A DNA stretch of 64,000 bases from Bigelowiella natans CCMP2755 (Eukaryota; Protista; Cercozoa): NCBI GenBank assembly GCA_000320545.1, contig ADNK01001573.1, positions 38,118 to 102,117 of the forward strand. The letters run 5' to 3'. Every line of letters begins with the position of its first letter. Position 1 is the first letter of the stretch. Under the pieces are notes generated by a model. It was not told the DNA's origin, did not search any database, and saw only the letters and a list, made by a program, of their open reading frames with translations. Shown one piece after another: positions 3,154-64,000 of the stretch. The position numbers were made by a program, and so were the translations under genes.

Positions 3154-4117
3154 TATCAAAACAACTACTACTCACCAGAGACCACCATCAATCCAGTGTT
3201 GTATCCTCCTGTTTGTTGTTGCATAAGCAACCATTTACTAGTAAGCAACCATTTTATCATAGGGGAGGGAAATGTCATATGCAAGATGCCAATCATTCAG
3301 AATGACCGTCATCATCATCAGATTCTACCTTGTTCGAACCAGCCAGCTTCTGTGAAGCGCATAATGGCCCCTTTTGAATACAAAATCCTATATTAATATT
3401 CGCTTTGACTGCATGGAAATTTGTTCATTGAGATGTATTAGATACTCTTGTACTGAAACAACGATTGGAAGCAGCATTAATGTTTTCACTATAAGTACTA
3501 CTATCATTTCTGCTGTACTTCCACAAACACTACTAGCGCTGATAAAATATCTAAAGGCAGCACTATTCGTAGTATCAAGCAATAAACGATGTGCTTGCAG
3601 CACCTACCTCCACACAAAAGACCGCCGAAGAAGATCAGGTGCAAAGGGTCAGGTGAAGCCTAAACGAAGAGGGAAGGGAGGGGTGATTAAGGTGATATTT
3701 CATGTGCTCTTTCTTATTCTGATGATCGATTCACCATCTTCCAAAGAAGTGATCATAATACAAGAGGTAGTACCTGGAAGGTAGACTGCAACCATGCTTT
3801 TTTAAATGTCCCTGAAATGCCCGTCACTAAAAATAGCAACATTTATTGGGCTAAATTGACGAGATCGAGATCCAAGGCTAAACAGAAGTTTTTGTTCTTA
3901 CCTCTTCCAATCATCGCAAGGTAGAACGTGGTACTCAGTCCTGGAAATTATACATCTGGTTATAAAGTATGCAAATAGCCCCATGTTAACGACACACCTA
4001 GGATTACTCCTCCAGCGGCCGCAAAGCCTAAAGCACGTTCATAATCGAGTCCCATGATGTGATGATAATGATTTTCGTGCGTCCCGAGGAGCAGCTACCA
4101 ATGGGCGGTATGTGGAT
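1..4117 (-). CDS. YeeE/YedE-family (thiosulfate/sulfur-compound transporter-like) membrane protein, two-module fused form; multi-exon, 3' end runs off the window, start codon not resolved
   Basis: Manually spliced GT-AG exons read [11 protein letters not shown]|[12 protein letters not shown]|VTGISG (~4030-3790), [25 protein letters not shown] (~2895-2970, GCTSGH hallmark), [15 protein letters not shown] (~2600), [10 protein letters not shown]|[13 protein letters not shown]|[18 protein letters not shown] (~1620-800) and KPILCQK|[16 protein letters not shown] (~610-232). Confidence 0.88.
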
Positions 4118-47782: not shown

Positions 47783-50700
47783 ATGCTACGTAGCCTGCCT
47801 CGTTTCTCATCAAGGCTTCGAAGAAGGGCTGACATGTTTATGCCCCTGAGTTCCAACTTCCGCACCCGCCCTTTTTCGTCTGAGGCGGCAGATGCCACTG
47901 AAGATGAGTACGGCAAGTAAGTAGAATCATCGCATTTGATGACGACTGATGGGTCATATCATCACTCCCAAGAAGTCCAAGCAGTTAGATCGCACACATC
48001 ATGCTAATTGACCAATCAATGAATAAATTACAGGATGGATTCAGACGGCAAATCGTATATCTTTGACGAATTCACGTACGACCAAAAACTAGTGGGCGCA
48101 TAGGATAGTGCAAGAAGACTTTTTGTAACTGAATAAGGCTGAGAATTTTCACACTGATCGCCTCCCCTCGCCTCCCCACATGTACGTAACTATATAGACT
48201 TGAATCAGGGACTGTTCTAAAACAGGCAGAAATTCGATACAAGGTGTAGAGGATGATAACAGAGAAAAATATATAAGTTATTATTAAGATGTGTTGCGAT
48301 TATTCACTCCTCCTCGCTACTGAACCATCAGACATTCGGAGAACTTAACGAGAAGGGGGACAACTGTGTACTAGTATTTCATGCTCTTACGGGGAATGCA
48401 GCGGTAGTAAAATCACAAACTTCTTGTAGTGTTAGGCTCTTCTGCCTTTTATGTAAGAAGAGGAAAAGATGGGGGAGGATTTGTGGCGATGATGATGATG
48501 ATGATGATGATGATGATAATGATGATGATGATATAGAATCGACATGTGCTTATGGTATATGAAACTAATGAATAACAATGAAAAGGAAACGCTGTTCACC
48601 ATCATCGTAATGTCTCATTTCTTATAGTAATCATAATTATTATCCTTGTCATTGGACCCACACCCTATCATTACTCTACTTGACTACGAAGTAACAACAA
48701 CAACAACAACAACAACAACAACCACCAGGTGGATGAATGGTGGGCGCCGCTCCTTGGAGAAGGGAAGCTGTTCGACACATCTAAATATATGGTAATGTCA
48801 ATCATTACCTGATGGATGAGGCTGCCGATGGTGATAACGAATGGTGATGGTATGATGATGATGGTGATGATGATGTACTATCCAGGTGTTCTGTGCGAAT
48901 ATCCTCGGCTCATGTTACGGATCAACAGGTAGTGCTACTAGTAGTATATAACAGCGATATACAGCAACAGCAGCAGCAGCAGCAGCAGTAGTGTCTATTT
49001 GCTGGGAACAACCTCATGCTCACATTCACACCTATCAGATGCTACCTAGACGACACCATTGCGTTGTATGTGGGGCTACTTATTGCACTCTACAAACTCT
49101 GTTCTTCGATAACACAACACTTGAATTATTACTCCCCCACCTACTTGCAGGACCGAATGATATCAATCCAGGGACGCAGGTGGAGGGAAGAGAAAAAGAG
49201 GAAGAGAAAGAGGATGATGATAATAATGATGATGATGATGATCATGAGGAGGGGGGGATAGGGGATATGCGTGAGGAACTCCAAATCTGCTGCACAAGTT
49301 TGATCATTCACAGCGATACGACATTCATTGGAAGAGGGAAGATAACGATTATTGATGAGGATGACTACATTTGTTGCGTTTTATCGTCCATCATGATATT
49401 GAACAACAGTATACCTAGATAAACTAACTTATATCACTGCAATCCAACAGACTGAGAACCCCTCCCCTCCTTATTCTTTCCTCCTCTTTGTACTCACAAA
49501 AAAGGAGCGATACGGCATGGAATTCCCCCCTGTCACTGTCAGAGATTCAGTCAGGTTTGCTTTTTATAACATGGAGGAGGAGGAGGAGGAGGAGGAGGAG
49601 GAGGAGTAAAGAAGAAGAAAGAAGAAGAAAGCAATGAGCAACAACATGATGCCTCTCTTTTCTTCATGATATAATAGTCCTTCCTTACCCAACTATTGCC
49701 CCCCCCTCGCTTACACAATGGTTAGATCTCAAAAGGCCATATTGGATTCTCTAGGTGTCAATCATATCAGGTAGTAGTGGTAGTAGTATTCCAAGCAACA
49801 TCTACTACGCGTCAGCAAAAGAGCATATTTATTTAATACTCCTAATTGCATTGCATGCAGCACCAACAACAAAAACTACTACCACTATTACTATTACTAC
49901 TACCACTACTACTACTATGCACAACATCATCATGATCATCATCAAAAACTACAACAACAACAAGCAACAAGAAGAAAAGCAAAAGTAACTATTTACTCTC
50001 AACGATGCTGCAAGAACACGCCGAACCTAAACACATTTAACATCTATGAACATGGTCTCCCATTATTATCGTGTTATTTGCCGTATTCTTCGTCTCCCAT
50101 TGCCCTTCTCACACTTTCTCTGCTACCCCCTCCTGCGATTGAATCTACAATTCAGATTCGCTATGGGAGGCAGCTTGGGGGGTAGGTTCTTGAAATATCT
50201 CAACAACATTGATAATCATACATATCCGCACGCATGCTAAGTATGTGTATAATAATCGTTTCTAATGATCTCGGTCAAAAAGGAATGAATTCCGTGAAGG
50301 CTTTAAGATAGGAACAATAATTTATTTAGTAATGTCATTGATAGCTCATCTTGTTTGGCCGCCTCCTCTTGTGCTCTTTCCCCTTTCTTATGTTAAAGCG
50401 CTCTATTGACACTGCGTGTGTGGTTTTTCTTGTTATTATTCTTCTTGTTCTCTTCTTCAGGCATGCTGACGTTAGAATGGGGATTGGAATGTGAGTTGGA
50501 GAATGAATAGATCTAGCAACATGATGATGATAATAATGATGATAATGGTGCTAGTGATGATGATGATAATAACGACGATGAGAATGATTTCATGGATGGA
50601 AAAAGAAGAAGAAGAAGAAGAAGAAGATTAAGAAGGATAAGTAGTTTATAAAAAAATAAAAAAGAGAGAAAGCAAAGTTGCACAAAGGCATAGACGCACA

Positions 50701-51951
50701 ATTACTATCTATCTATGATTCATATGGATGATCCACCTTTTGGCCTCTTCATCGATTCATCGTGATTTTATGTGTGAATTAGACGGCGACACCGTTGATA
50801 GCCTTGTCGTGATGGCCTGTGGTGCAAGAGAGACTGCATGGCAAATTGCCATTAACGAAACACAGCGCCAGGCTATTTTTAGAGATCCTAATTGGGAGGA
50901 CGGAAAGGGCAAGGTGAGGAATAATATGATAAAGTTAACGAAGACAGCAGCAGAAATACCATCAATGTTTTTATGTTGGAACATCACAGCTTTACTCTTT
51001 ATTATTATGATGATATCATTATTATTATCATTATCACCATCGTTATGTTTGTATCATAACAACTTAGGCTTACGGAGGACTTGGATTGGCACGTCAAATA
51101 GCGATGGTTTCTTACCGCAGCCATGCGGTAGTAAAGCAACAGCAAATGGATGATAATATATCAAAAGAAGAAGAGGAAGATGAAGAAAACGAAGGAAGAG
51201 AAAAGAAGGAAGAGAAAAAAGCCAAAACACATATTATAAGCAATATGATTTGCCAATTCCTTCGCTAATAAGTGTATGGGTGTTGTTGCATAATTACGGC
51301 TACATAGAGAAACTGATATAGTAACCATACTACTCTTTCAATTACACCGCACACGTGAGATGTCGTCGTCATCATCATCGTCATCATCATCATCATCATC
51401 ACTATCATTATCATCAACATCATCAGTTATTGACGGTCATTATGATTAGGCGTACAATAAGAAATTCGGCAGGAAACTCACAAAGGAAATGGTTGGTTCA
51501 GCCTTTTGATATACCAGCCAATTCAACTTATCCTCCTCTTTCCACCAATCGCCCTTCTTCACATACATTTTTTTCTTCTCTGTATCTCGTCGCTATCATC
51601 ACTAGAGATCGAGTTTATGTTCCACATCCTCCTCCTCCTCCTCCATGAAAATTATCCATCATCATCATCATCATCATCGAAATCATCATCACCATCATCA
51701 TCAACGATACTCTTCATCATTGTCATTATCATAAAAAATGATCTCATATACCAATTTCGTACATCATAGGAGGCCGAATATGGCGATGCAGACTCAGCCA
51801 TACTGAATGGAAAAGTGCCTCATTACAACGTGGAAGGCTATTTGGCTTATCAGGTGAGCAGTAGAAGTTATAGTAGTAGCAGCAGCAGCAGCAGCGGGTA
51901 ATACCCGCTATTTACTTCTTCCATTCTTCGTGTTATTTAGCAGATGCAAAA

Positions 51952-52005
<54 letters not shown>

Positions 52006-52088
52006 GTGTGTGTGTGCGTGTGTGTGTGTGTGTGTTTTGCTCCCCTCTTCCCCCCTCCCTTTGTCCAGGATCTCTGTGCGCTACTATT

Positions 52089-52130
<42 letters not shown>

Positions 52131-52304
52131 TTCTCGCTCACTCTCTTTCCTTTCTCTATCCCCTTCTCTTGTCATTGTTCTGATTCTCTCTGCTTCTTCT
52201 TCTTCTTCTTCTTCTTTTTCTTCTTCTTCTTCTTCTTCACCTACTACTAATCGGTAGGATCATAAGTTTCTCTCAAGATTTGACGCAGCGTCTTATGTTC
52301 GATG

Positions 52305-52337
<33 letters not shown>

Positions 52338-53463
52338 CGCTACTACTTTGTGCTGTTGTTTGTCATTGCTACTGCTGCTACGAAGAGAAGCAGCTAAGAC
52401 CGACAAGGATGACGGAGGAATAGTCTCCTTGATTAGTTTATCAAATACGATAAGTTGTATGACTGCTGTTTGTTCTTCTTCTTCCTCTTCTTCCTCTTCA
52501 TCGTCATCATTAGGTATGGGAACTCTCGATTCTCACGATGTGGTAGTTAAGCATGGTTTGCAGTAGAAATAGAGCACACCGCTCTACTGTAACAACCGTT
52601 ATAGATCAGAAGCTGCATATTGCACACATTATCTCTACTAGAACACACACACACACACACACATCTCACAAAAGTTAATAATACCCTCGAAGTCACGACT
52701 CATCTTGATCGGAGAAGGTACCGTCATAAATCTCTCTTTTACCTCATTTTCTCTCATCACTAGGGACGCTCACGAGGAGGGATCGAAAGTGCGCTGAAAT
52801 CGCTAAAAATGCCAACTCTTGTTATCGGTAGTAAAACAAACTTTCTAATAAAATACAAACGATTATATATCTGTAAAAAGCGTTCTTCATATTTCATGAA
52901 GAAATTGCGCTTGCGAAATTCAATGATAACTGCGAAAGACAGGCTATTTGATGCTGAGCGTCTTTTCTCATCTAGGTTTCGATAGTGACAACCTGTATCC
53001 GGTGTCGGAGCAGAAAGAATTGGCTGCGCTTATTCCTGATTCTGAGGTTGCTGATGTGCAATTACATCCATATGTGAGAATACCCTATCGCTGTTTGCTA
53101 GTTAGCAGCAAATAGCTCATTATTATGCATATTTTGGTAAAGGGTTGCAAACATCACAACAAGTAATAATTTGTGTGCTGCTTATTGGCTGTTGGGCAAT
53201 TTAGCTTGCAATACTCTCCTCGGATGCTGGGCATGACGCATTTCTCCTAGAATATGAGGTTAACGAAAACCAGAGATGATTGATCTATAGCCTCATTAGC
53301 ATTATTGTTGATGTCTCCGCGTGCACCTTCGTTGTTGATGATGATGATGAAAAATATCGTCTGGCTATATTCCACCCCTCCTTCACCATGTAAATGATGT
53401 TCATAGGCAACACAGAAGGCGTGCTGGGAATTCTTCGACAAACATCATCCAAACCAAATATAG
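47783..53463 (+). CDS. MET2: Homoserine O-acetyltransferase (MetX/MET2 family, alpha/beta hydrolase) with N-terminal organellar (mitochondrial-like) presequence, multi-exon
   Basis: MLRSLPRFSSRLRRR..., FTLESG..., TFGELNEKGDNCVLVFHALTGNA, WWAPLLGEGKLFDTSKY|VFCANILGSCYGSTG, FPPVTVRDSVR, GGSLGG|M (nucleophile Ser), GLGLARQIAMVSYRS, RFDAASY, DSDNLYP (Asp) and GHDAFLLE (His); stop 53461-53463. Confidence 0.92.
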
Positions 53464-53579
53464 CAACAAGAACTTAGTTTGCTGAACGACAAACGCAAAT
53501 TGTTCGAAGTAGGTAACTTGTCGTTGATTCCCGACGTTGCAAAACAGAGCATAAAGTGTTAATATTGAGCCTGCTGGCC

Positions 53580-53795
53580 GCCACCATGCTAGAATGTACC
53601 ATCGGTCTGCGTTGTCCGTACGTTTCATTGCTTCATGTTGCTACACCGTTCAGCATGGAGCTATCATCTAGATTTTTGGTCCTCTATGACCACTAAGCAT
53701 GTACGACATGTAGCGCTAGAGCGCAGCTAGCGTGGCACTGAAAACCGCACGCTTGCACCTAGCTAGCAAGCTAGTGTTGGATGGCCAACACTAGA
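53580..53795. repeat. Palindrome-rich island 6, left half (interrupted by the copia element; right half 60890-61070)
   Basis: ctagctagcaagctagtgttggatggccaacactag; the same composition resumes right after the 3' LTR (tctagctagccatgctagc, gctagctagt). Confidence 0.75.
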
Positions 53796-54163
53796 TGTCA
53801 GCGGTCTGGCCGCGCCACCCACGATCAAGGAGCTGTCGCAGCATGCGCACGTCCACTCGTGCTGCACGCTGCGCTGCGCACATGCGCATGGAAGTTCTCA
53901 GAACTTCGGGAATCTTCCAGAATCTTCGAGAACATTCCGGAAGCTTCGAGAACCTTCCAGAAACACTCGAGAGAATTCGAGAGAATTCTGGAAGATTCGA
54001 GAATCTTCGCGAATGCGCCGGAACCCAATGCGCACATGCATGCAGCGCAAGTCACAAGTCATCATCAGAATCCAAAAGCACACGAGACCGCGTGTTGACT
54101 TTCCAACATCAACAGCACAGTCCCGCGCACAAAAGCCAAACAGCTACCGCTAGTCCGCTAAAA
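53796..54163 (+). repeat. 5' LTR of copia element (TG...AA)
   Basis: Begins tgtcagcggtctgg and ends ccgctaaaa; matches 60522-60889. Confidence 0.95.
53905..54013. promoter_or_regulatory. Heat-shock-element (nGAAn inverted repeat) array in the LTR; second copy at 60631-60739
   Basis: TTCggGAAtcTTCcaGAAtcTTCgaGAAcaTTCcgGAAgcTTCgaGAAccTTCcaGAA (12 phased units, 53905-53962) and TTCtgGAAgaTTCgaGAAtcTTCgcGAA (6 units, 53986-54013). Confidence 0.8.
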
Positions 54164-54174
54164 GGTTATGAGCC
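54164..54174 (+). other. Primer-binding site GGTTATGAGCC, complementary to the anticodon stem-loop of initiator tRNA-Met (half-tRNA priming)
   Basis: The reverse complement GGCTCATAACC matches the tRNA-iMet anticodon arm; this is the PBS type of Drosophila copia and Ty5 (hemiviruses). Confidence 0.85.
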
Positions 54175-54333
54175 TCAAGAGGACTTGCAAAAGAACCAAG
54201 CAAACCCCCCACCCCCCCCCTTCAGCTACATCCTTCCAGAAGAAGGAACTGAAAGCGACAACAGCATTCCCTCAGCCAATCTTCGGTCAAGCCTCCAAAG
54301 CACTGAAAACAAAGAAAACAGGAACGAAACAAC

Positions 54334-57300
54334 ATGTCAGAAAAGCAGATAGACTCCCTGCTGAAAAACTTCACCCTCAAGTACGATGGTAGCAACTACA
54401 AGCCCTACATGTACAAGCTAATGTCCGCCTTTGAAGCAGCGGATTTGGAATCATGCTTCAATGTCAACATAGAAACAGAAGGAAAGGTGACAGAAGTCAA
54501 TGTACGCACCGACCCCGCTCACCGACGAGAAGTACTCAAGCTCTCTCAGGAGCAATTCGACATCCTCAACCCTAAACCCGAAGGAAGAGGATCACAAGAA
54601 AAGATAAACAAAAGAAAGAGAGGAAGATTCTTCCTCACTGCTACCCTTCCTGATAAATTCTTCGATCTACTCGAAGGAAAACCCAAAGACGTAGCAGTTA
54701 CCTTAGCAGCCTTGCTGGAGAAGTACGAGCCTACCAATCCTGTAGCCGTCAGGAAACTTTATTCGAAGCTAAGTGATATAAACATGGGTCAGTACAATGG
54801 AGACTTCACGAAGTATCATTCTGACCTTGACTCGACGATCAGAAGACTTCGAGCACAGCACGAAGGATACTCCGACAATCAAGCTCTTACCACTCTACTT
54901 CGAGGACTTGTACCTAGAGAAAAATACGAGACTATAGTAACAGTCATTAACAACAAGAAAGATGTTACCTTCGACTCTGCAGTGGACATGATCCGCTCCC
55001 ACATGAACTCCCGATCGTTAGATGACGGGCAGAAACCTTCAAAGAAACATGCAGGACACACCAGTGCAGAACACAAATACGTGAAGATGTACGATGGCTT
55101 GGAGAAAAGGCTAAATGAACTTACGGGTCAGCTGAAGACCTACAAGAGGAAATTCAACAAAGGAAAGAACAGATACAACAGCGAAGCATATCAAGACAAT
55201 TCCAAGAAGCAAAAGAGAGAAGACTATTTCTTGAACTTAAAGAAAAGAACAAAATGCCATTACTGTGGCAAGAAAGGACATTGGGAAAAGGAATGCAGAA
55301 ACAAGATGAGAGACGAAGGCAAGCAGAACAAAGGAAAACACTATTCTTTTATAGATCATGGCTCCCCTTCCCAAAGACCCTCTTACATTAATAAGATGGC
55401 ACGCGACAATTCTTACCTGCACACGCTGAAGTACAACCATAAGCCTTTGATCCTTCTCGACAGCGGAGCCAACAACCACTTCTTCTGCGACCGCGACTTC
55501 TTCAACGAGTTGAAACCTATTCAACCACGATACATAGAAGTTGGCAAAGATGGGACAGGATTCTTTGTGGATTATGCAGGCGACGTCGAACTAACTACGA
55601 AAAACAAGCAAGGAAAGATGCATAAAATTGTTCTACAAGGAGCTTTGTACTCTGAAGAAGCTGCAGGCAATGTGATTTCTCTAAACAGACTAGTTAAGAG
55701 TGGCAGCGAGTACAAAGGAACAAAACAAGGAATAAGCATTACCGCCAACGGAGAGGAATACGCGTTCGGGGACTTTCAAGACGACGGCCTATTTTATTTG
55801 AGATATAAACAAATAAACAAAAGTACAAAAACACAAAGATTTAAATCCTACCCAATGAAACAGCCATCTTCAATCAAGCACGCACATAACATCCTAGGGC
55901 ACATCGCAGCGGATAAGATAAGAGACACCTATGCAGTTACAGAAGGTTTACCTTATTCCAAGACGATAAAAATACCAAAGAAGATCTTTTGCAAGGCCTG
56001 TGATGTAGCCAAAACAAAAAGATCTCCGATCTTTGATCCAAGCGCCCAAGAAAGGATGAAACAGCATCGGAATAAAGCAAAGATTGAGGACGATGCTGTC
56101 AAAAAGAAGCAAAAATGTGTACCTGTTATCCACAAGAAAAACCGGATGTGGAATAGAATTCACTCTGATGTAAAGACCATGCCTAACAGCATGGATGGTT
56201 ACAAGTATTTCGTAATATTCGTACATGAAGGAACAAGGTGGGTTACCTTGGAGCTCATGAGAAAGAAAAGCGAAGTTACGCAGAAAACCATACAGTTCCT
56301 AAAGCACATCAGAAAGCTTCCAGGTTGTGGAAGCATAGACGAATTCAGATCGGATGGTGGAGGTGAATATATGAGCGCAAAGCTACATAGCTGGCTCACC
56401 TCCGAAGGAATAAAATGGGTTCCTAGCACCGCCCGAACACCTGAGCAAAATGGAATGTCCGAGCGTCACATACAGACTATCATGGCGAAAACAAGAGCTA
56501 TGTTAGAACATGCACGCTTACCGGTCGGATACTGGTCCTACGCAGCTCAGACTGCAGCATATCTCCACAACGTCACCTCACATCGCAGCACACCTGGTAG
56601 AAAAACGCCTAAAGAACTACTGCACCATGAGCAACCAAATCTAAAGAATCTAACTACCTGGGGATGCATCGGAGTAAACCACATCGACAAGGAACTCCGA
56701 CCTGCAGGTGGTATGGGTGCTAGAGGTGAATACGTACGTATGTTGGGATATGACGATAGATTTGGTACTTTTCTCGTCGCCACGAAGACGCTGAAAATTA
56801 GAAGAGTCCGTGTAACTAAATGGTACCACACAGTGTTTAAGTTTCCTTCGCTGAAGAGAAACAAAGTTAGTGATTCGGCTTTGGCGTACCTTTATCCAGA
56901 AGGTCCTGCCGACGCGGACGCCCCCGAACCATCCAGTGCAACTGACGAGTTGCCAGAGGATGGTGGGCCTGAAACAAAAGCAAAAAGTAAACCTCGAAGG
57001 TCGAATAGAGAAAATAGGGGAGTACCTGGTATTCGTTACGGAATACTTGGTAGCTATTACGACCGCCTGATGAACATAAAAGCTCCATCAGTACAAGAGA
57101 TCGAGGACCTTCCTAAGACGTATGACGATGCAATCACAGGAGATGATAAGAAGCATTGGATACCTTCTACGGAAGAGGAACTGCACCAGCTTCGAAAACT
57201 TGGAACGTTTACGCTGGTAGTGCGACCTAAGGATACAAATTTAGTTACATCTAAATGGGTATTCAAGAAGAAAATAAATGTAGACTATACCATTCGGTAT

Positions 57301-58779
57301 AAGTCAAGGCTGGTCGCGCGAGGGTTCACGCAGATCCCGGGAGAAGACTTCTTCTTCTCTTATTCCCCGACGTTGTCCCTAAATAGTTTTCGGATAATGT
57401 TAGCCATAGCATCTATCCTCAAGCTAAAACTACACGGGATAGATATACTTACAGCTTTCCTAACTGGAAAGATGGACTGTAAAGTACACATGGAAATACC
57501 TAAAGGGTGGAAGCCGAAGACACCTGAGGAAATCCGGCTATACAACAGTGGCCTTCCACTAGCCCTACTGGTAAACAAAAGCATTTATGGGCTGACACAA
57601 GCAAGTGCAATATTCAGCCTTACCTTGCTCGAGCATCTCAACGCCATTGGCTTCGTCCAGCTTTATTCCGATCCTTGCCTAATGATAATGCACAGACAAG
57701 GAAGAATCATCATATTGTCATGTTTCGTGGATGACATATGCATAGCATATCAAGATAAGAGAGACCTGGACTTTGTCATGAAGCGAATAGGCGACAAGTT
57801 TGAGTTTCGCGATGAAGGCGAGCTAAAGAAAACACTGGGCATAAGAGTTGGTAGCGACAATGAGGGAAACTATTGGATATCGCAGGAAGACTACCTCACC
57901 AGACTCGCCCAGAAGTATGATATCACGCCTACGAAAAGAGCAAAAACACCAATGATAACAGGATCGAAGTTAGACGAATACGAGGAGCATGATAAGGTGG
58001 ATCAAAAGGCATACAGATCCGTCATAGGAGCTGCAATGTATGCAGCTGTGGCTACTAGACCAGACATATGCTACACTCTATCTCGTCTAGCTTCCTACAG
58101 TCAAGATCCTAGAACTATACACTACATCGCTGCAGTACGCTTACTGCAGTATCTGGTCAATACAAAGGATAAAAGAATTACCTTTAAAGCAGCGTCCAAA
58201 CCTGAGCTTAAAGCTTACGTCGATGCCTCCTGGAAAACCTGCAAGAAAACGGGTAAATCATACTCAGGATATTTCATATCGCTAAGCAACGCACCTGTTG
58301 TCTGGAAGAGCAACAAGCAAAAGGTCGTTGCTATGTCCAGTGGCGAGGCTGAGTACATAGCACTATCAGATATATGCAGAGAGTTAGTGTATGTCACTCA
58401 GTTACTACAGGAGTTAAAGATGAAGATACCGAAACCTGTACCTGTGTATTGTGACTCTCAAGCAGCTATCTCCATTGCAGCCAAGCCTGGATTCACACAA
58501 AAAGGCAAGAACATAAGGATAGAATATCACAATGTTCGTGATAACTATCAAACTAAGCAGATCTGCATAAACAAAATACCTGGGGAGGACAATCCCGCTG
58601 ATATACTTACTAAGGCTCTACCAGGACCTAGCAACAAGAAACACTGTGATTTCTTGTTCCCTATATCATACAGAGAAAAACTAACCATCATGCTACAAGG
58701 CACCAGAAAAAGAAAAATAACTACAAAGACTCTACCTTACAAGCTCCCTCGCCTTGTCGGCCCCACGTCCGCTCTATGA
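54334..58779 (+). CDS. Copia Gag-Pol polyprotein (1481 aa)
   Basis: Zinc knuckle CHYCGKKGHWEKEC, protease LLDSGA, integrase HHCC (HNILGH...CKAC) and DDE (HSD...RSDGGGEY...QNGMSER), RT (YKSRLVARGF...FVDD) and RNase H (YVDASW...EAEY...YCDS...NPADILTK); no stops or frameshifts. Confidence 0.97.
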   Translation: MSEKQIDSLLKNFTLKYDGSNYKPYMYKLMSAFEAADLESCFNVNIETEGKVTEVNVRTDPAHRREVLKLSQEQFDILNPKPEGRGSQEKINKRKRGRFFLTATLPDKFFDLLEGKPKDVAVTLAALLEKYEPTNPVAVRKLYSKLSDINMGQYNGDFTKYHSDLDSTIRRLRAQHEGYSDNQALTTLLRGLVPREKYETIVTVINNKKDVTFDSAVDMIRSHMNSRSLDDGQKPSKKHAGHTSAEHKYVKMYDGLEKRLNELTGQLKTYKRKFNKGKNRYNSEAYQDNSKKQKREDYFLNLKKRTKCHYCGKKGHWEKECRNKMRDEGKQNKGKHYSFIDHGSPSQRPSYINKMARDNSYLHTLKYNHKPLILLDSGANNHFFCDRDFFNELKPIQPRYIEVGKDGTGFFVDYAGDVELTTKNKQGKMHKIVLQGALYSEEAAGNVISLNRLVKSGSEYKGTKQGISITANGEEYAFGDFQDDGLFYLRYKQINKSTKTQRFKSYPMKQPSSIKHAHNILGHIAADKIRDTYAVTEGLPYSKTIKIPKKIFCKACDVAKTKRSPIFDPSAQERMKQHRNKAKIEDDAVKKKQKCVPVIHKKNRMWNRIHSDVKTMPNSMDGYKYFVIFVHEGTRWVTLELMRKKSEVTQKTIQFLKHIRKLPGCGSIDEFRSDGGGEYMSAKLHSWLTSEGIKWVPSTARTPEQNGMSERHIQTIMAKTRAMLEHARLPVGYWSYAAQTAAYLHNVTSHRSTPGRKTPKELLHHEQPNLKNLTTWGCIGVNHIDKELRPAGGMGARGEYVRMLGYDDRFGTFLVATKTLKIRRVRVTKWYHTVFKFPSLKRNKVSDSALAYLYPEGPADADAPEPSSATDELPEDGGPETKAKSKPRRSNRENRGVPGIRYGILGSYYDRLMNIKAPSVQEIEDLPKTYDDAITGDDKKHWIPSTEEELHQLRKLGTFTLVVRPKDTNLVTSKWVFKKKINVDYTIRYKSRLVARGFTQIPGEDFFFSYSPTLSLNSFRIMLAIASILKLKLHGIDILTAFLTGKMDCKVHMEIPKGWKPKTPEEIRLYNSGLPLALLVNKSIYGLTQASAIFSLTLLEHLNAIGFVQLYSDPCLMIMHRQGRIIILSCFVDDICIAYQDKRDLDFVMKRIGDKFEFRDEGELKKTLGIRVGSDNEGNYWISQEDYLTRLAQKYDITPTKRAKTPMITGSKLDEYEEHDKVDQKAYRSVIGAAMYAAVATRPDICYTLSRLASYSQDPRTIHYIAAVRLLQYLVNTKDKRITFKAASKPELKAYVDASWKTCKKTGKSYSGYFISLSNAPVVWKSNKQKVVAMSSGEAEYIALSDICRELVYVTQLLQELKMKIPKPVPVYCDSQAAISIAAKPGFTQKGKNIRIEYHNVRDNYQTKQICINKIPGEDNPADILTKALPGPSNKKHCDFLFPISYREKLTIMLQGTRKRKITTKTLPYKLPRLVGPTSAL

Positions 58780-60521
58780 AAGCCCCACGTCCATTTAGAA
58801 ACCTACAACATATAAACATATAGGCTGCAAGGTTTTAATGGCACACATCTTTGTATGTGTGTACCTTTCCTTGCGTATCTTGCTATGGACTATATGCACA
58901 GTGTCTTCCAGACACTCTCGCTATCATGGGGGCGAATGTAGAATACGCTATAGATTTCTATATGATTGCACAGTGTCTTCCAGACACTGCACAATCATGG
59001 GGGCGGATATAATAATGAAGACGAGATACCTAGTGTATAACAAATACGAAGTCAAATATAAGGAGAGAACATGCAAAAGCTGTATACTACAAGATACCTA
59101 CGAAGTTAACAAAAGGAAAAACGATCGCCTGGAGATCCACACAATTATCGGTATTATATTGGAAGTGGCGAGGCATCTGCTGTGGCTCCTATGTACAATG
59201 GCCACAATAAAGAAATGCAGAGACCGCAACAAAGCAGCATGGGTAATATAGCGATTTCTAAGGCACGTGAACTTGAGTCTCCATACAGGGTTAACGGATC
59301 GTCCACAGCATGACTACCAAGGAGGGCCTATTCACAAAGACAACCAAATAGTTACGCAGAGAAATGGCTATCACAGATCCAGGCCGGTCGAAGCGGTGAA
59401 TATTCATTATGAGGAAGTTAGCGCCCCTTATGGTGCTCAGTGATGACTCATTATTATATAAATAATTCAATAACCGTCGTTATAGCTTTCCGGTAAGAGA
59501 ATCCTCGCTCCCCCCTTCATGGAAGCAGGCAGAAGGGGAATCTATCACAATGAGGGTTCTGGCACAAAAGGTTATCATGGCAAGGACACCGATAGATCGA
59601 AATTGGCCGCACCTTATGAGACAAAATCGCGCCTACAGGGCGAAGCATACTTGGGGTCGAACGTTCGGGACCAGGCAAGAGCAGCGGTCCCTCAACAAAG
59701 CTTTGAGGGGGCTCCTCCACCCCCCCTTCCTCGTCATATCACTAACGAAACAGCTAGTATTAGCTTAGTCTCACAAAAACGCAGCAACAATCTGGAATCT
59801 TTCTGGAACTTTCATGGGCATCAGAAACAACCCTTCAAAGTAGACCGCCGTAGCCATCACAACGCAAACAGCAGCAGCAGTAGTGACAGTGTAAGTGACA
59901 GAGATGGCATCAAACAGCAACGATCAAACCAGAAGGGTCGTGCTGCTCGTGCTGCTGATGACGAAAAACAGAAGAAGAAGAAGGAGGAAAGGACTACTTG
60001 CACTACCCACCTGTCTACCTACCTACCGAGCCTTGGTCAACACCGCATGTGGGTGCAGGTGACGAACGTAGGGCATTCCGGAATTTTTCTGGAATCTTTC
60101 TGGAAGTGCCCAGGGGATTCCAGAATTTTTTCTGGAAGTGCACCAGTGTCGCAGAAAAATTCTTTTCTGAAAGCACACTGGTGTCGTTCAAAAAAAAATT
60201 AATTTTTTGGACAAGTCCCAGTTCGTACCGAAATGGTGGCACCTTGCCCAGTCAGGCAAGAATTTTTCCTGCCGATTTCGGAGTGCACCATGCCCATGGC
60301 ACCTTGCCCAGTTGCAAGCCTGGGAATTTTGTGCCTCTGCACAGAGTTTTTGGGCGTCTGGTGGTGCGATGTTTGGTCGGCAAAACATTGCCAACCATTC
60401 GGACTCCGAAACCTTTGGGAATGGCGTCCATGTGCAGCACCGTGCAAAAGTTCTGTCACCATGGCAGAAATGGCACGTGCACATCAGCACTCTGATCGTG
60501 GTCACCACGTCCATGGGGGCG

Positions 60522-60889
60522 TGTCAGCGGTCTGGCCGCGCCACCCACGATCAAGGAGCTGTCGCAGCATGCGCACGTCCACTCGTGCTGCACGCTGCGC
60601 TGCGCACATGCGCATGGAAGTTCTCAGAACTTCGGGAATCTTCCAGAATCTTCGAGAACATTCCGGAAGCTTCGAGAACCTTCCAGAAACACTCGAGAGA
60701 ATTCGAGAGAATTCTGGAAGATTCGAGAATCTTCGCGAATGCGCCGGAACCCAATGCGCACATGCATGCAGCGCAAGTCACAAGTCATCATCAGAATCCA
60801 AAAGCACACGAGACCGCGTGTTGACTTTCCAACATCAACAGCACAGTCCCGCGCACAAAAGCCAAACAGCTACCGCTAGTCCGCTAAAA
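60522..60889 (+). repeat. 3' LTR of copia element
   Basis: Direct repeat of 53796-54163, followed by TSD ctaga. Confidence 0.95.
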
Positions 60890-61077
60890 CTAGAACATGA
60901 CATCATCAGTTCAGCGACTCTAGCTAGCCATGCTAGCAAGAGGCTAGCAAGAGCAAAAAGCCACCAGGCAACAGGCTACCTAGCTACATCAGTTGAGCCG
61001 TGCTAGCGTGCGCTGGCTAGCTAGTGCGTTTTTGATGATCATCATCGTGCTAGTCTTAGCTAGCAACAACAACAATG

Positions 61078-62230
61078 TCATGATGGCTGGATTTGCATCC
61101 AACGTTGCACCAGATCGATGATGAGGCTAAAGGCTCTGTGTGTTCGCTGTTGACGTTTGATTGAATCGTGGACGCGGAGGTGCAGCTGGTGAGTGCCGTT
61201 TGAAACGGAAAAACCGCAAGGACGTTTTCGATGGCTCGTGCCGTGTTTCGTGAAAACGCAGCAAGCTGGCAAGTGTCACAGCACGTCGTTCAGTGGTTCG
61301 GGTGATCACACAATTTCAACGTCAAACGATTTTTCTGGAGGGAATCTGGCTGCTTTTGGGTTCCGCCTTTTGTTGTTTCACTTGACGCGAAAGAAAGCTT
61401 CTCTTCAAAAAACTGACAATGAGCTCATCGTGAAGTTCGGAACGTGTCGTTCCGCCCACATTGGGAAATTTTCCCCAGATCAATTGACGGCACACTCCAG
61501 AGACAAGAGCGTGCTCATGCACTCTCGCGTGACAAACTCAGGGAAACAACTTCTGTGATGTGGTTCAAGAGGAAAGATTTTTGTGCTGCACGTCAAACCG
61601 TCATGCTTCCTGCAAAAGAAAGCTGTCGCCTACCAGAAATAGAATGGAAATCTGTCCGAAATGGTCTGCCTGACAAAACCATTCCATTGCCTTCGTGTCG
61701 TCAAAATAAGTCCAGATACTTCGGTGAGAGAAAAAGGTCTACAATTAGACCAAAAACAAAAGTGGATCATATTGGTATGTCTCAGATGAACTGTACAAGG
61801 AGATTTCAATTGGACGGGCATTGAAGAGGTCAATGCTATCTCTATTTTGAACATTATTGACAGCGAATATTCGCATTGTTACTTCGCACATATGTTGTCG
61901 TTTGTAGAAGACGCAGTGTGTTGATGAACAAAAAGATATTGGAAGAAAAATCTGAATAATGTCGAATGAGAATCCATAGCTTACCCAGCCCCTACCATTG
62001 CTTCCAATCGTTTACCTATGGAGCGTACGAGTACCCCCGGGTCAGATACGTGGGGATCAGCCCGACATTTGGGTGGGGAAGCCACGCCATTATTTAGGGG
62101 TCCTGGAAGTGGTGGGAACATCGGAAATAGGGATGCAAAACAAGGTCTTCCTTCTACAATCCTGCTTCATCAACCGTCGGGTAGGCGGTTTCCAGTTCCC
62201 CTGGTTGGTTCTAATCGGTCGCATCTGCCA
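61078..62230 (-). CDS. Probable spliced host gene of unknown function (3' part); its 5' region may be displaced by the second LTR element
   Basis: Complex sequence with phase-compatible GT-AG exons (GPLNNGVASPPKC...MVGAG|FFFQYLFVHQH...|NIDLFNARPIEIS...) and an ORF stop at 61078 abutting the palindrome island. No domain recognised. Confidence 0.4.
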
Positions 62231-62268
62231 AGGCAGTGCAAGGTCTCCTATGTTTATATATTGCGATT

Positions 62269-64000
62269 TGTAGCGCGTACCACTACGCGGGCACAAGTCA
62301 CGTGCGACAACAAAGGGGTTGTCGCGGATATAGAATATAGATAACGTAGATATTAATACAGCATAGGCACGTGGGTTCCGGCGGGACTCATGGCAGCACA
62401 CCGGAAGTGTGCTGCCCCACGTGCGGCGGCATTCGCGAAAGCTTCGCGAATGATTACGCAGTGCACGATTTAATAAAAATATAATCTTTAATAAAAATAA
62501 ACACAACTCTTCAAAAGGAAGCAAACGTGCCTTTCCCCCCCCCTGCCTACTTGTGCACGTAGCGCCTCGGCCTGTGAACACCTTACGCGCAACAACCTTT
62601 GGCTTCCACACACGGGAAACGATTTGACTAACAATGTCACAGCAGCTAGAAGAACAGCAGGACTTTGGCTCGCAGGCCGTGCAAGGGCACGAGCAGAAAC
62701 AGGAAAGGAAGGGCGATACGGACGCTAAGGAAGGAGGAGGAACACCTCCACAGGCACCGCCGGGACCAGCACCCGGGATTAAGAAAGCAGATGCAGCAGC
62801 AGAGGCACTGGAGAACTTCTACGAGGCGGACGACGAGGACGTGGCCGCCGAAAGCAAGAAGGTCGTAATGGCATTACGAGCCTTGCGACCCAGGGCGAGC
62901 AACTACGCCAAACTGAAAGTATCGATAGAATACAAGTATCAGACACATGATGTTTGGGCAGCTATCATGCAGGACATCATGGATTACGAAGCAGACTTAC
63001 CTCCAGAGTGGGCAGCTTTGTTTAGGAACGACGGGGGTCTGGGCGCCTCGCGGGGGACGACCCAGAGCACCGTCAAGCAGCAGCAGCCGGTACAGCGGAA
63101 CACCCAGTTCATGTCTGTTAAAACAGCACCGGTTATGATAACGAAATACAACGGGAAAAGAGGTGAGGCAAGGAGGTGGTGGAAGAACGCTAGGAGTATA
63201 CTCTGCGACTTTACCCCTAACCCCACCGAAAACGACAAGCTCAAATGGCTAGCTATAATAAAGCAAGCCATGGACCTTTACGAGACAGGCAGGACCCGGA
63301 TCAGGCAGCTAGAGAAAATACACACTACAGTTAGTGGGCTACGAGACGTTGAGGCGATAATGAAGGCTTTTGTAAATGAACAGGATGCTAACTCCCTACC
63401 CCAGGCTATTAGAAAATACAGAGCAATGATGCAGCATGAGAGAGAACCTGTTAGAGACTTTGCCACGCGCTTCCAGGATATGATCGACGAACTACATGAT
63501 TTTAATTACAACACAGGTGATGATCAGGCAAGGTTTGAAGAGTTCAAGTTAAAGATAAAGGAATCCACTTACGTTACGGAGAAAGGCTACACCACGATGG
63601 AGGCAGCAGTGCAGGCTATATCCCTACGCGAGCAGGAGCAGGACCGCAAGTTTACCAGCCCTAAGGTACCTGGCATAGGAAACATTAACGCTATTAAGCC
63701 GCAGCGAGACTGGTACAAGGACAGGGAAGGTAACCGACGTTGCGGATACTGCTCACGTAAAGGGAAACACACCGCTAAAGACTGCAGAGACAGGAAAGAA
63801 GGACGACCCAGGATGACGATCAGGCAGCTCAACGAACACTACGAGAAGTTAAAGAGAAAGAAAGGCAGAGGACAAGGATATAACAACAGCAAATGGCAAG
63901 GCAGCAACAACGGGAAGAACAATAAATATAAGAACAAAAAGCAGAACAGTATCAATGCTATACAGCAGCAGATAAACGGAATATTAGATCACCTTTAAGC
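62269..64000 (+). mobile_element. Second LTR retrotransposon (probably Ty3/gypsy-like), 5' LTR + PBS + gag; truncated by window edge
   Basis: Putative LTR 62269-62594 bounded by TGTAGCGCGTA...TACGCGCAACA (11-bp inverted ends, 1 mismatch) with AATAAA signals. PBS TGGCTTCCACACACGGG (62600-62616) is complementary to a tRNA 3'-CCA end, and a gag ORF follows. Confidence 0.82.
62634..63998 (+). CDS. Retrotransposon Gag protein (454 aa)
   Basis: Capsid-like segments (KYNGKRGEARRWW; major-homology-like MQHEREPVRDFATRF) and a zinc knuckle variant CGYCSRKGKHTAKDC; intronless. Confidence 0.85.
   Translation: MSQQLEEQQDFGSQAVQGHEQKQERKGDTDAKEGGGTPPQAPPGPAPGIKKADAAAEALENFYEADDEDVAAESKKVVMALRALRPRASNYAKLKVSIEYKYQTHDVWAAIMQDIMDYEADLPPEWAALFRNDGGLGASRGTTQSTVKQQQPVQRNTQFMSVKTAPVMITKYNGKRGEARRWWKNARSILCDFTPNPTENDKLKWLAIIKQAMDLYETGRTRIRQLEKIHTTVSGLRDVEAIMKAFVNEQDANSLPQAIRKYRAMMQHEREPVRDFATRFQDMIDELHDFNYNTGDDQARFEEFKLKIKESTYVTEKGYTTMEAAVQAISLREQEQDRKFTSPKVPGIGNINAIKPQRDWYKDREGNRRCGYCSRKGKHTAKDCRDRKEGRPRMTIRQLNEHYEKLKRKKGRGQGYNNSKWQGSNNGKNNKYKNKKQNSINAIQQQINGILDHL

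Follow-up and report, generated by a model that had tools for sequence, protein, structure and literature searches.

The locus examined here lies in a 64,000-nucleotide stretch of the genome of Bigelowiella natans (hereafter the window) and raises the question of whether a long row of alternating GAA and TTC triplets in the long terminal repeats (LTRs) of a retrotransposon is a regulatory array of heat-shock elements (HSEs), read by the heat-shock factor (HSF) of the host, or a tandem repeat that only resembles one. The question is a genuine one, because TRF also describes the array as a repeat with periods of 10 and 20 bp and 69–70% matches between the copies. We therefore consider in turn the element and its array, the variation of the array across the family, the heat-shock factors and chaperone promoters of the host, and the RNA that derives from the element.

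The retrotransposon and its LTR array

The element that carries the array is an intact Ty1/copia LTR retrotransposon, which bears out the copia identity given in the original prediction. Its two direct LTRs (positions 53796–54163 and 60522–60889, both on the plus strand) are 368 bp long and 100% identical, the 5′ LTR starts with TG, and the element is enclosed by a 5-bp target-site duplication, CTAGA, at positions 53791–53795 and 60890–60894. An uninterrupted gag-pol open reading frame (ORF) of 1481 amino acids occupies positions 54334–58779 of the plus strand. Pfam matches within it comprise Retrotran_gag_2 (residues 104–227), Pol_BBD (residues 374–457), rve (residues 608–703) and RVT_2 (residues 958–1208), and the resulting order of gag, protease, integrase and reverse transcriptase (RVT_2) is that of Ty1/copia elements. 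The paired LTRs with their short duplication, and the combination of a tRNA-pairing primer site with a purine-rich tract at the 3′ LTR, are likewise features of this group.

The primer-binding site directly follows the 5′ LTR (54164–54177, plus strand) and shows 14 nt of complementarity to a tRNA-Met gene of the same genome (L083, positions 57–128). Its pairing partner is the anticodon stem-loop of this initiator-type tRNA-Met, not the tRNA 3′ end. Drosophila copia is said, in work by Kikuchi and colleagues from 1986, to be primed by a fragment of initiator tRNA-Met (half-tRNA priming), and the two elements are alike in that the primer site pairs with the region of the anticodon stem-loop and not with the 3′ end. 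This likeness is confined to replication and has no bearing on the HSE array. At the opposite end of the element, the polypurine-type tract CCATGGGGGCG (60511–60521, plus strand) abuts the 3′ LTR, and such a tract precedes every 3′ LTR of the family.

Within the 5′ LTR, block A of the array (53905–53962) comprises 12 perfect TTC/GAA units that alternate at exactly 5-bp steps, and block B (53986–54013) comprises six perfect units at the same spacing. Both blocks recur in the 3′ LTR at 60631–60688 and 60712–60739. The unit counts and coordinates of the original prediction were reproduced exactly in both LTRs, including the duplication of the array in the 3′ LTR, and the in-phase array proved to be slightly larger. 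When positions 53904–54014 are framed as in-phase nGAAn/nTTCn pentamers, there are 22 slots, 19 of which are perfect. The three imperfect slots read CTC, GAG and GAG; the G is kept in all of them, and the sole miss is the outermost core base, which is the A farthest from the G when the unit is read as nGAAn. Blocks A and B are separated by a phase slip of 1 bp (one extra base at 53964) and a linker (53965–53985) of four in-phase units, one a perfect TTC and the others the three one-mismatch units. The distal edge of the array, upstream of block A (53891–53907), is formed by two out-of-phase GAAnTTC dyads with 4/6/4 spacing. A canonical perfect-type HSE consists of at least three contiguous inverted nGAAn units at 5-bp spacing, and the two blocks extend this arrangement to 12 and 6 units. 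Downstream of the array, a CCAAT motif of putative promoter function (54025–54029, plus strand) lies between the array and the candidate transcription start site described below, and no TATA-like motif was found in the 368-bp LTR. Two other kinds of signal were considered for the array and ruled out: a STAT-type site, because the dyad spacing is N2 and not N3, and a nucleosome-positioning or curved-DNA signal, because AA and TT lie half a helical turn apart.

The 1.7 kb that separate pol from the 3′ LTR are treated here as non-coding, with no recognisable coding content. Pfam gave no match for any of the three ORFs in this region, and an ESM Atlas search with the 227-aa ORF (59519–60202) had a best score of 0.75 and provided no lead. 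The same region contains an internal cluster of five TTCnnGAA dyads (60076–60137, with dyad starts at 60076, 60087, 60098, 60118 and 60130), about 390–450 bp upstream of the 3′ LTR. In a sister subfamily (L056, 517–560) the same internal place is occupied by a perfect 8-unit array that is made of four copies of the 10-bp unit TTCCAGAATG. Just past the pol stop, at 58885–59005, there are two copies of a repeat of ~70 bp, each of which contains a CAGTGTCTTCCAGACACTG-like stretch able to form a hairpin, together with a PPT-like ATCATGGGGGCG (starts at 58926 and 58997); the PPT-like sites may be extra sites of plus-strand priming.

Variation across the family and the origin of the array

A search of the genome with the LTR returned at least 42 matches from 83 first-look candidates. 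Among the 40 LTRs that were fetched, 25 are identical copies of 358 bp with 10 + 6 units, and the 12 + 6 arrangement occurs only in the window copy, which retains a 10-bp unit that is absent from the dominant form and present in sister subfamilies. These sister subfamilies (80–90% identity) carry 13 + 6, 17 + 5 + 6 and 17 + 6 + 6 units, up to a total of 29 units. Across the family, which includes at least 40 near-identical LTRs, the longest uninterrupted run varies from 10 to 17 units, and the differences in array length between subfamilies are almost always multiples of 10 bp, with the phase kept. At least nine distinct insertions are flanked by matching 5-bp target duplications. The near-identity of the LTRs at distinct insertion sites establishes that the family is very young and recently active.

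Some regularities were also observed at the insertion sites. The window copy is inserted in palindromic spacer DNA rich in CTAG and GCTAGC (53700–53795 and 60890–61080), and four of the nine target duplications contain CTAG; the family may thus prefer this CTAG-rich class of spacers. Among contigs C3477, C1239, C3730, C319, C176 and C418, some combine a 5′ flank and a 3′ flank whose target duplications differ, or have a flank in common with another contig, which suggests haplotigs or assembly misjoins across the identical repeat.

A chance origin of the array is excluded by two counts. No run longer than 4 units arose when the window was shuffled 200 times, and runs of at least three units were expected 0.7 times; across the 91.4-Mb genome, a 6-unit pattern gave 383 matches per strand versus 0 for the same pattern reversed. 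A more demanding alternative is that the array is a neutral minisatellite of 10 or 20 bp, produced by replication slippage in the LTR, and therefore a look-alike of HSEs with no regulatory role. The periodicity reported by TRF is what such a minisatellite would give, unit number does differ between copies, and pure TTCnnGAAnn satellites of up to 24 units occur in many metagenome contigs, which indicates that slippage alone can build long arrays. A neutral minisatellite would, however, spread the differences between its units evenly over all unit positions. The deviations from the consensus among the 22 units instead fall on 3 core versus 27 spacer bases (binomial P = 1.7e-8), and the imbalance persists when the repeat is taken to be the 10-bp unit (3 core versus 20 spacer deviations, P = 4.6e-6) or the 20-bp unit (3 versus 16, P = 1e-4). 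The view that only the GAA/TTC cores are conserved between variable spacers, and that the array is not a simple satellite, thus stands for all three choices of unit.

Two further comparisons concern the mutations themselves. In six long-form LTRs, the private changes of single older copies affect 4 core and 4 spacer columns, approximately the neutral share. Since private changes strike the cores as freely as the spacers, the sparing of the cores among units is not a mutational bias; the unit-to-unit variation avoids the six core positions of the putative minisatellite, yet private mutations in dead copies reach them without hindrance. Between subfamilies, no part of the LTR varies less than the array, which is again at odds with neutral slippage. 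None of its 135 columns carries a subfamily-defining substitution, versus 16 of the 255 columns elsewhere in the LTR (P = 0.002), and its overall variability is about a third of that outside (5.9% versus 17.6%, P = 0.001). The second cluster of TTCnnGAA dyads inside the element also argues against a neutral minisatellite.

The last point against a neutral minisatellite comes from metagenomes. A scan of metagenome contigs for at least 10 perfect in-phase HSE units identified at least 120 contigs (L085–L204) with 10–24 units; among the contigs listed, approximately one in four is a pure 10-bp satellite in which one unit is repeated, and others have variable spacers. When HSP70, sHSP and two copia pol proteins were compared with the 120 contigs listed using tblastn, pol was matched in one contig only, L111 (Ga0157371_10030395; 18–2528 and 3391–3480). 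This contig contains a copia element with a chromodomain ahead of RVT_2, and its pol is 27% identical to the pol of the window element over the RT–RNase H region. Its LTR bears 6 + 12 perfect HSE units, and the primer-binding site after this LTR is of the GGTTATGAGC type, as in the window element. Long HSE arrays in copia LTRs are therefore not unique to Bigelowiella natans, and a distant copia bears the same kind of array. In view of these observations, we regard the neutral minisatellite as improbable. The array is neither a product of chance nor a plain satellite, and its pattern of variation points to a row of predicted HSF-binding motifs that is kept by selection in both LTRs.

Host heat-shock factors and transcription of the element

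Whether the host encodes an HSF DNA-binding domain, a point that the original prediction left to be checked and on which it could have foundered, was addressed by a search of the genome with the Pfam HSF_DNA-bind profile. Two canonical loci were found (97.7 bits; 54.8 and 32.7 bits), and the objection does not apply. The gene on C1696 encodes a protein of 289 amino acids with the recognition helix SFVRNLNMYGFR and a coiled coil, and its matches in the PDB are the DNA-binding domains of human HSF4, HSF2 and HSF1 (E = 2e-21 to 1e-19, the best being the HSF4 domain at E = 2e-21). The gene on C2910 is split by introns and encodes SFVRQ/LNFYGFRK and a coiled coil. Both genes thus share a recognition helix of the form SFVR(N/Q)LN(M/F)YGFR, followed by a coiled coil.

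Perfect 3-unit HSEs are almost absent upstream of the chaperone genes of the host. The possibility that the host does not use HSEs at these genes was considered on this ground and dropped, because a scan that allowed one mismatch gave an enrichment specific to promoters. In the 1-kb upstream regions of 17 HSP70/HSP20 matches, the density of HSE-like triplets with at most one core mismatch is 2.47 per kb, versus 0.28 per kb in the coding and downstream parts of these loci and 0.26 per kb in the window background, which corresponds to an approximately 9-fold enrichment in the promoters of HSP70 and small-HSP loci. At least one such triplet is located upstream at 15 of the 17 loci (P = 3e-8), and 4-unit elements are present at 5 of the 17, versus one in 56.7 kb of background. 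This promoter-specific enrichment indicates that the heat-shock regulon of the host uses the canonical motif. The HSP promoters contain only 3–6 units, and these are imperfect, whereas the array of the transposon is several times longer than any host array observed. That host promoters manage with 3–6 mismatched units, compared with 18–29 in the transposon, counts against reading the array as a heat switch.

We nevertheless consider it fairly likely that the array is an HSF enhancer of the LTR promoter that responds to heat or proteotoxic stress, with both HSF binding and heat inducibility as predictions from the sequence. The element would probably be switched on through the stress response of the cell, as ONSEN is in plants. 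In the mechanism that we propose, the array in U3 would form a landing platform for several trimers of the host HSF and act as an upstream enhancer of the LTR promoter in an active Ty1/copia family. Heat or proteotoxic stress would activate HSF, several trimers (there is room for 6–7) would bind the contiguous nGAAn units cooperatively and, once bound, would drive the synthesis of genomic RNA from a start site some 65–70 bp downstream. Growth and shrinkage of the array in 10-bp steps would make copies differ in dose, and the lineages that retain the GAA/TTC cores would be those that still transpose.

The family is transcribed in the sense direction. Logan contigs from runs of about six studies labelled as the same organism contain 57–80% of the words of the element, and those of three studies (X1, X3 and X7) carry many spliced joints with CT..AC ends, which identifies them as RNA-derived. 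Raw reads were analysed for one RNA run, X24 (conditions coded), and mapped to positions 53600–59599. The sense depth was 1157 and 1991 in the two LTR bins, compared with 7 in the upstream flank and 4–330 in the interior; the LTR depth is a sum over some 40–80 copies, and expression per copy is modest. The strand of these reads follows from the spliced joints. The CT..AC joints, which are GT..AG on the minus strand, were read only by minus-strand first mates, so the first mate reads in the sense of the RNA, and most of the LTR reads are sense.

About 1770 sense read fits in X24 begin at positions 54078, 54081 and 54083 (456, 698 and 620, respectively), 65–70 bp downstream of the last HSE unit. 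This pile-up (54078–54083, plus strand) is consistent with the 5′ end of the transcript and provides a candidate for the U3/R boundary, although the exact start site is an inferred one. The read fits are preceded by ~9 loose letters with a weak C-rich consensus that ends in ATG (agreement 0.44), and this prefix could be a remnant of an adapter or UMI or the product of a jump.

A multiply spliced antisense RNA was also observed, which covers nearly the whole element on the minus strand (54302–59286). Its 75 joints, 15 of which are listed, were seen in contigs of three studies and in minus-strand X24 reads. The listed joints each skip 56–257 nt, and 14 of the 15 have CT..AC ends on the plus strand, corresponding to GT..AG on the minus strand. 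Its two longest ORFs reach only 105 and 108 aa, and the RNA is therefore probably non-coding. It could be a trigger of silencing or plain read-in transcription.

The RNA data bear on a second alternative, in which the array binds HSF or another factor that recognises TTCnnGAA dyads, and serves as a strong constitutive or general-stress enhancer and not as a heat-specific switch. On this view, expression would occur in ordinary culture, and the element would be restrained post-transcriptionally, by the spliced antisense RNA for instance. Assemblies from about six studies with no heat shock on record, some of them RNA-derived, contain most of the words of the element, and transcription may accordingly be constitutive and not heat-specific. 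The abundant sense LTR reads in X24 and the antisense RNA that covers the element fit this picture, and yeast HSF is bound and active without stress. These observations are tempered by the coding of the culture conditions of the runs, and the N2 spacing of the dyads is of the HSE type, while the host chaperone promoters use the same motif. We therefore judge a constitutive enhancer to be rather unlikely. A literature search found no paper on transposons or heat-stress transcriptomes of Bigelowiella natans.

A third alternative assigns the array mainly to the service of the host, with solo or flanking LTRs recruited as promoters or enhancers that make nearby genes heat-inducible, in the manner of the HSEs of Caenorhabditis Helitrons. 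HSEs work in either orientation, and at one copy 198 X24 reads extend past the end of the LTR into the flanking DNA (3′ LTR of the C3735 copy). The copies are, however, near-identical, very young and inserted at varied sites, several of them in CTAG-rich spacers between genes. No identifiable gene adjoins the window copy, where the depth of the flank is low (7x); Pfam searches with seven flanking ORFs and an Rfam search of positions 49000–64000 gave no match. Co-option by the host as the main role of the LTRs thus appears very improbable, and the stress-inducible HSF enhancer of the element's own promoter remains the reading that we carry forward.

Comparison with stress-wired transposons

If the element is heat-activated, it would be the third experimentally approachable LTR retrotransposon that hijacks the heat-shock response and the first in Rhizaria, after the plant element ONSEN and the flatworm elements of Macrostomum, the two cases validated so far. 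Its family offers a natural allelic series, in which the longest run measures 10, 12, 13 or 17 units and which could reveal how the number of HSF sites relates to promoter strength. The LTR is also a strong candidate for a stress-inducible promoter in a genetically poorly equipped organism, and heat activation would have a bearing on the genome stability of marine algae under warming. A wider reading, which we put forward tentatively and think somewhat doubtful, is that copia elements of protists repeatedly build very long HSF landing pads whose length, adjusted in 10-bp steps, provides tunable control over the dose of stress-triggered transposition. The series from 10 to 29 units in the family of the alga and the 18-unit array of L111 fit such repeated pads and dose control. 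Were this true, Bigelowiella natans would provide the first stress-wired retrotransposon of a rhizarian, and no LTR element would have longer natural HSE arrays than those in its LTRs.

One of the closest counterparts is ONSEN (ATCOPIA78), which has one 4-unit HRE and a gap-type HRE, is bound by HSFA2 and is induced roughly 900-fold (Cavrak et al. 2014, PMC3907296; Pietzenuk et al. 2016, PMC5059998). The HRE of ONSEN originated in the Brassicaceae and grew by duplication of a TTCnnGAA proto-unit (PMC5059998). Both elements belong to Ty1/copia and have LTRs in which contiguous nGAAn units precede the start site, a candidate one in the case of the alga, and in both the HSF pathway of the host is the proposed activator. 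They differ in the 18 perfect units (22 in phase) of the window element, and up to 29 in its sisters, versus a 4-unit HRE in ONSEN, and in the host, a rhizarian alga versus a plant. The proposed likeness is functional only, with no homology of the LTRs claimed, and HSFA2 binding and induction, which were demonstrated for ONSEN, are predicted for the alga. Other Brassicaceae copia elements (TERESTRA, COPIA37 and ROMANIAT5) represent independent, species-specific gains of HSE clusters in LTRs, a process to which the present family is similar. TERESTRA has 5–6 units, and unit number correlates with the strength of the response among these elements; their clusters have at most 5–6 units, and variation in 10-bp steps is not reported for them (PMC5059998).

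In the flatworm Macrostomum lignano, four Ty3 families have 1–4 HSEs per LTR and show heat induction of more than 250-fold, which is lost when the HSEs are mutated, and the authors predict further cases across the tree of life (PMC12801592). In these Ty3/Mdg4 elements, as in the element of the alga, canonical HSEs were captured convergently a short way upstream of the start site in the LTR (a candidate site in the alga), and the families are young, with tens of copies. The flatworm elements belong to another superfamily and have only 1–4 HSEs, and their heat induction is demonstrated whereas that of the alga's element is predicted. ONSEN and the Macrostomum LTR elements together provide the precedent that perfect arrays of 3–4 units suffice for HSF-dependent heat activation (PMC3907296, PMC5059998, PMC12801592).

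The densest clusters for comparison are those of Caenorhabditis Helitrons, in which tandem overlapping HSEs number more than 10, and in some cases more than 50, per kb, with binding of HSF-1 detected by ChIP (Garrigues et al. 2019, PMC6927752). As in the alga, dense tandem HSEs are spread by a transposon, and Helitrons account for most of the long HSE arrays in their genome. In contrast to the present element, Helitrons are DNA transposons and their HSEs do not form part of an LTR promoter. The Helitron clusters are as dense or denser, which makes it unsafe to claim the longest array in any transposon, although the claim can be made for the LTR retrotransposons reported so far. The description of the array as extreme in the original prediction consequently stands among reported LTR retrotransposons (4 units in ONSEN, 6 in TERESTRA and 1–4 HSEs in Macrostomum) and falls when it is extended to transposons in general; perfect arrays of at least 10 units are present in at least 120 metagenome contigs as well. 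The interpretation given in the original prediction is supported in part: the copia identity, the conservation of the cores and the presence of a host HSF stand, and heat induction, HSF binding and an effect on neighbouring genes keep the status of predictions. In summary, the analysis yields a well-supported prediction, made from sequence, of a known kind of mechanism, with ONSEN, the Macrostomum LTR elements and the Caenorhabditis Helitrons as convergent analogues of the element of the alga.
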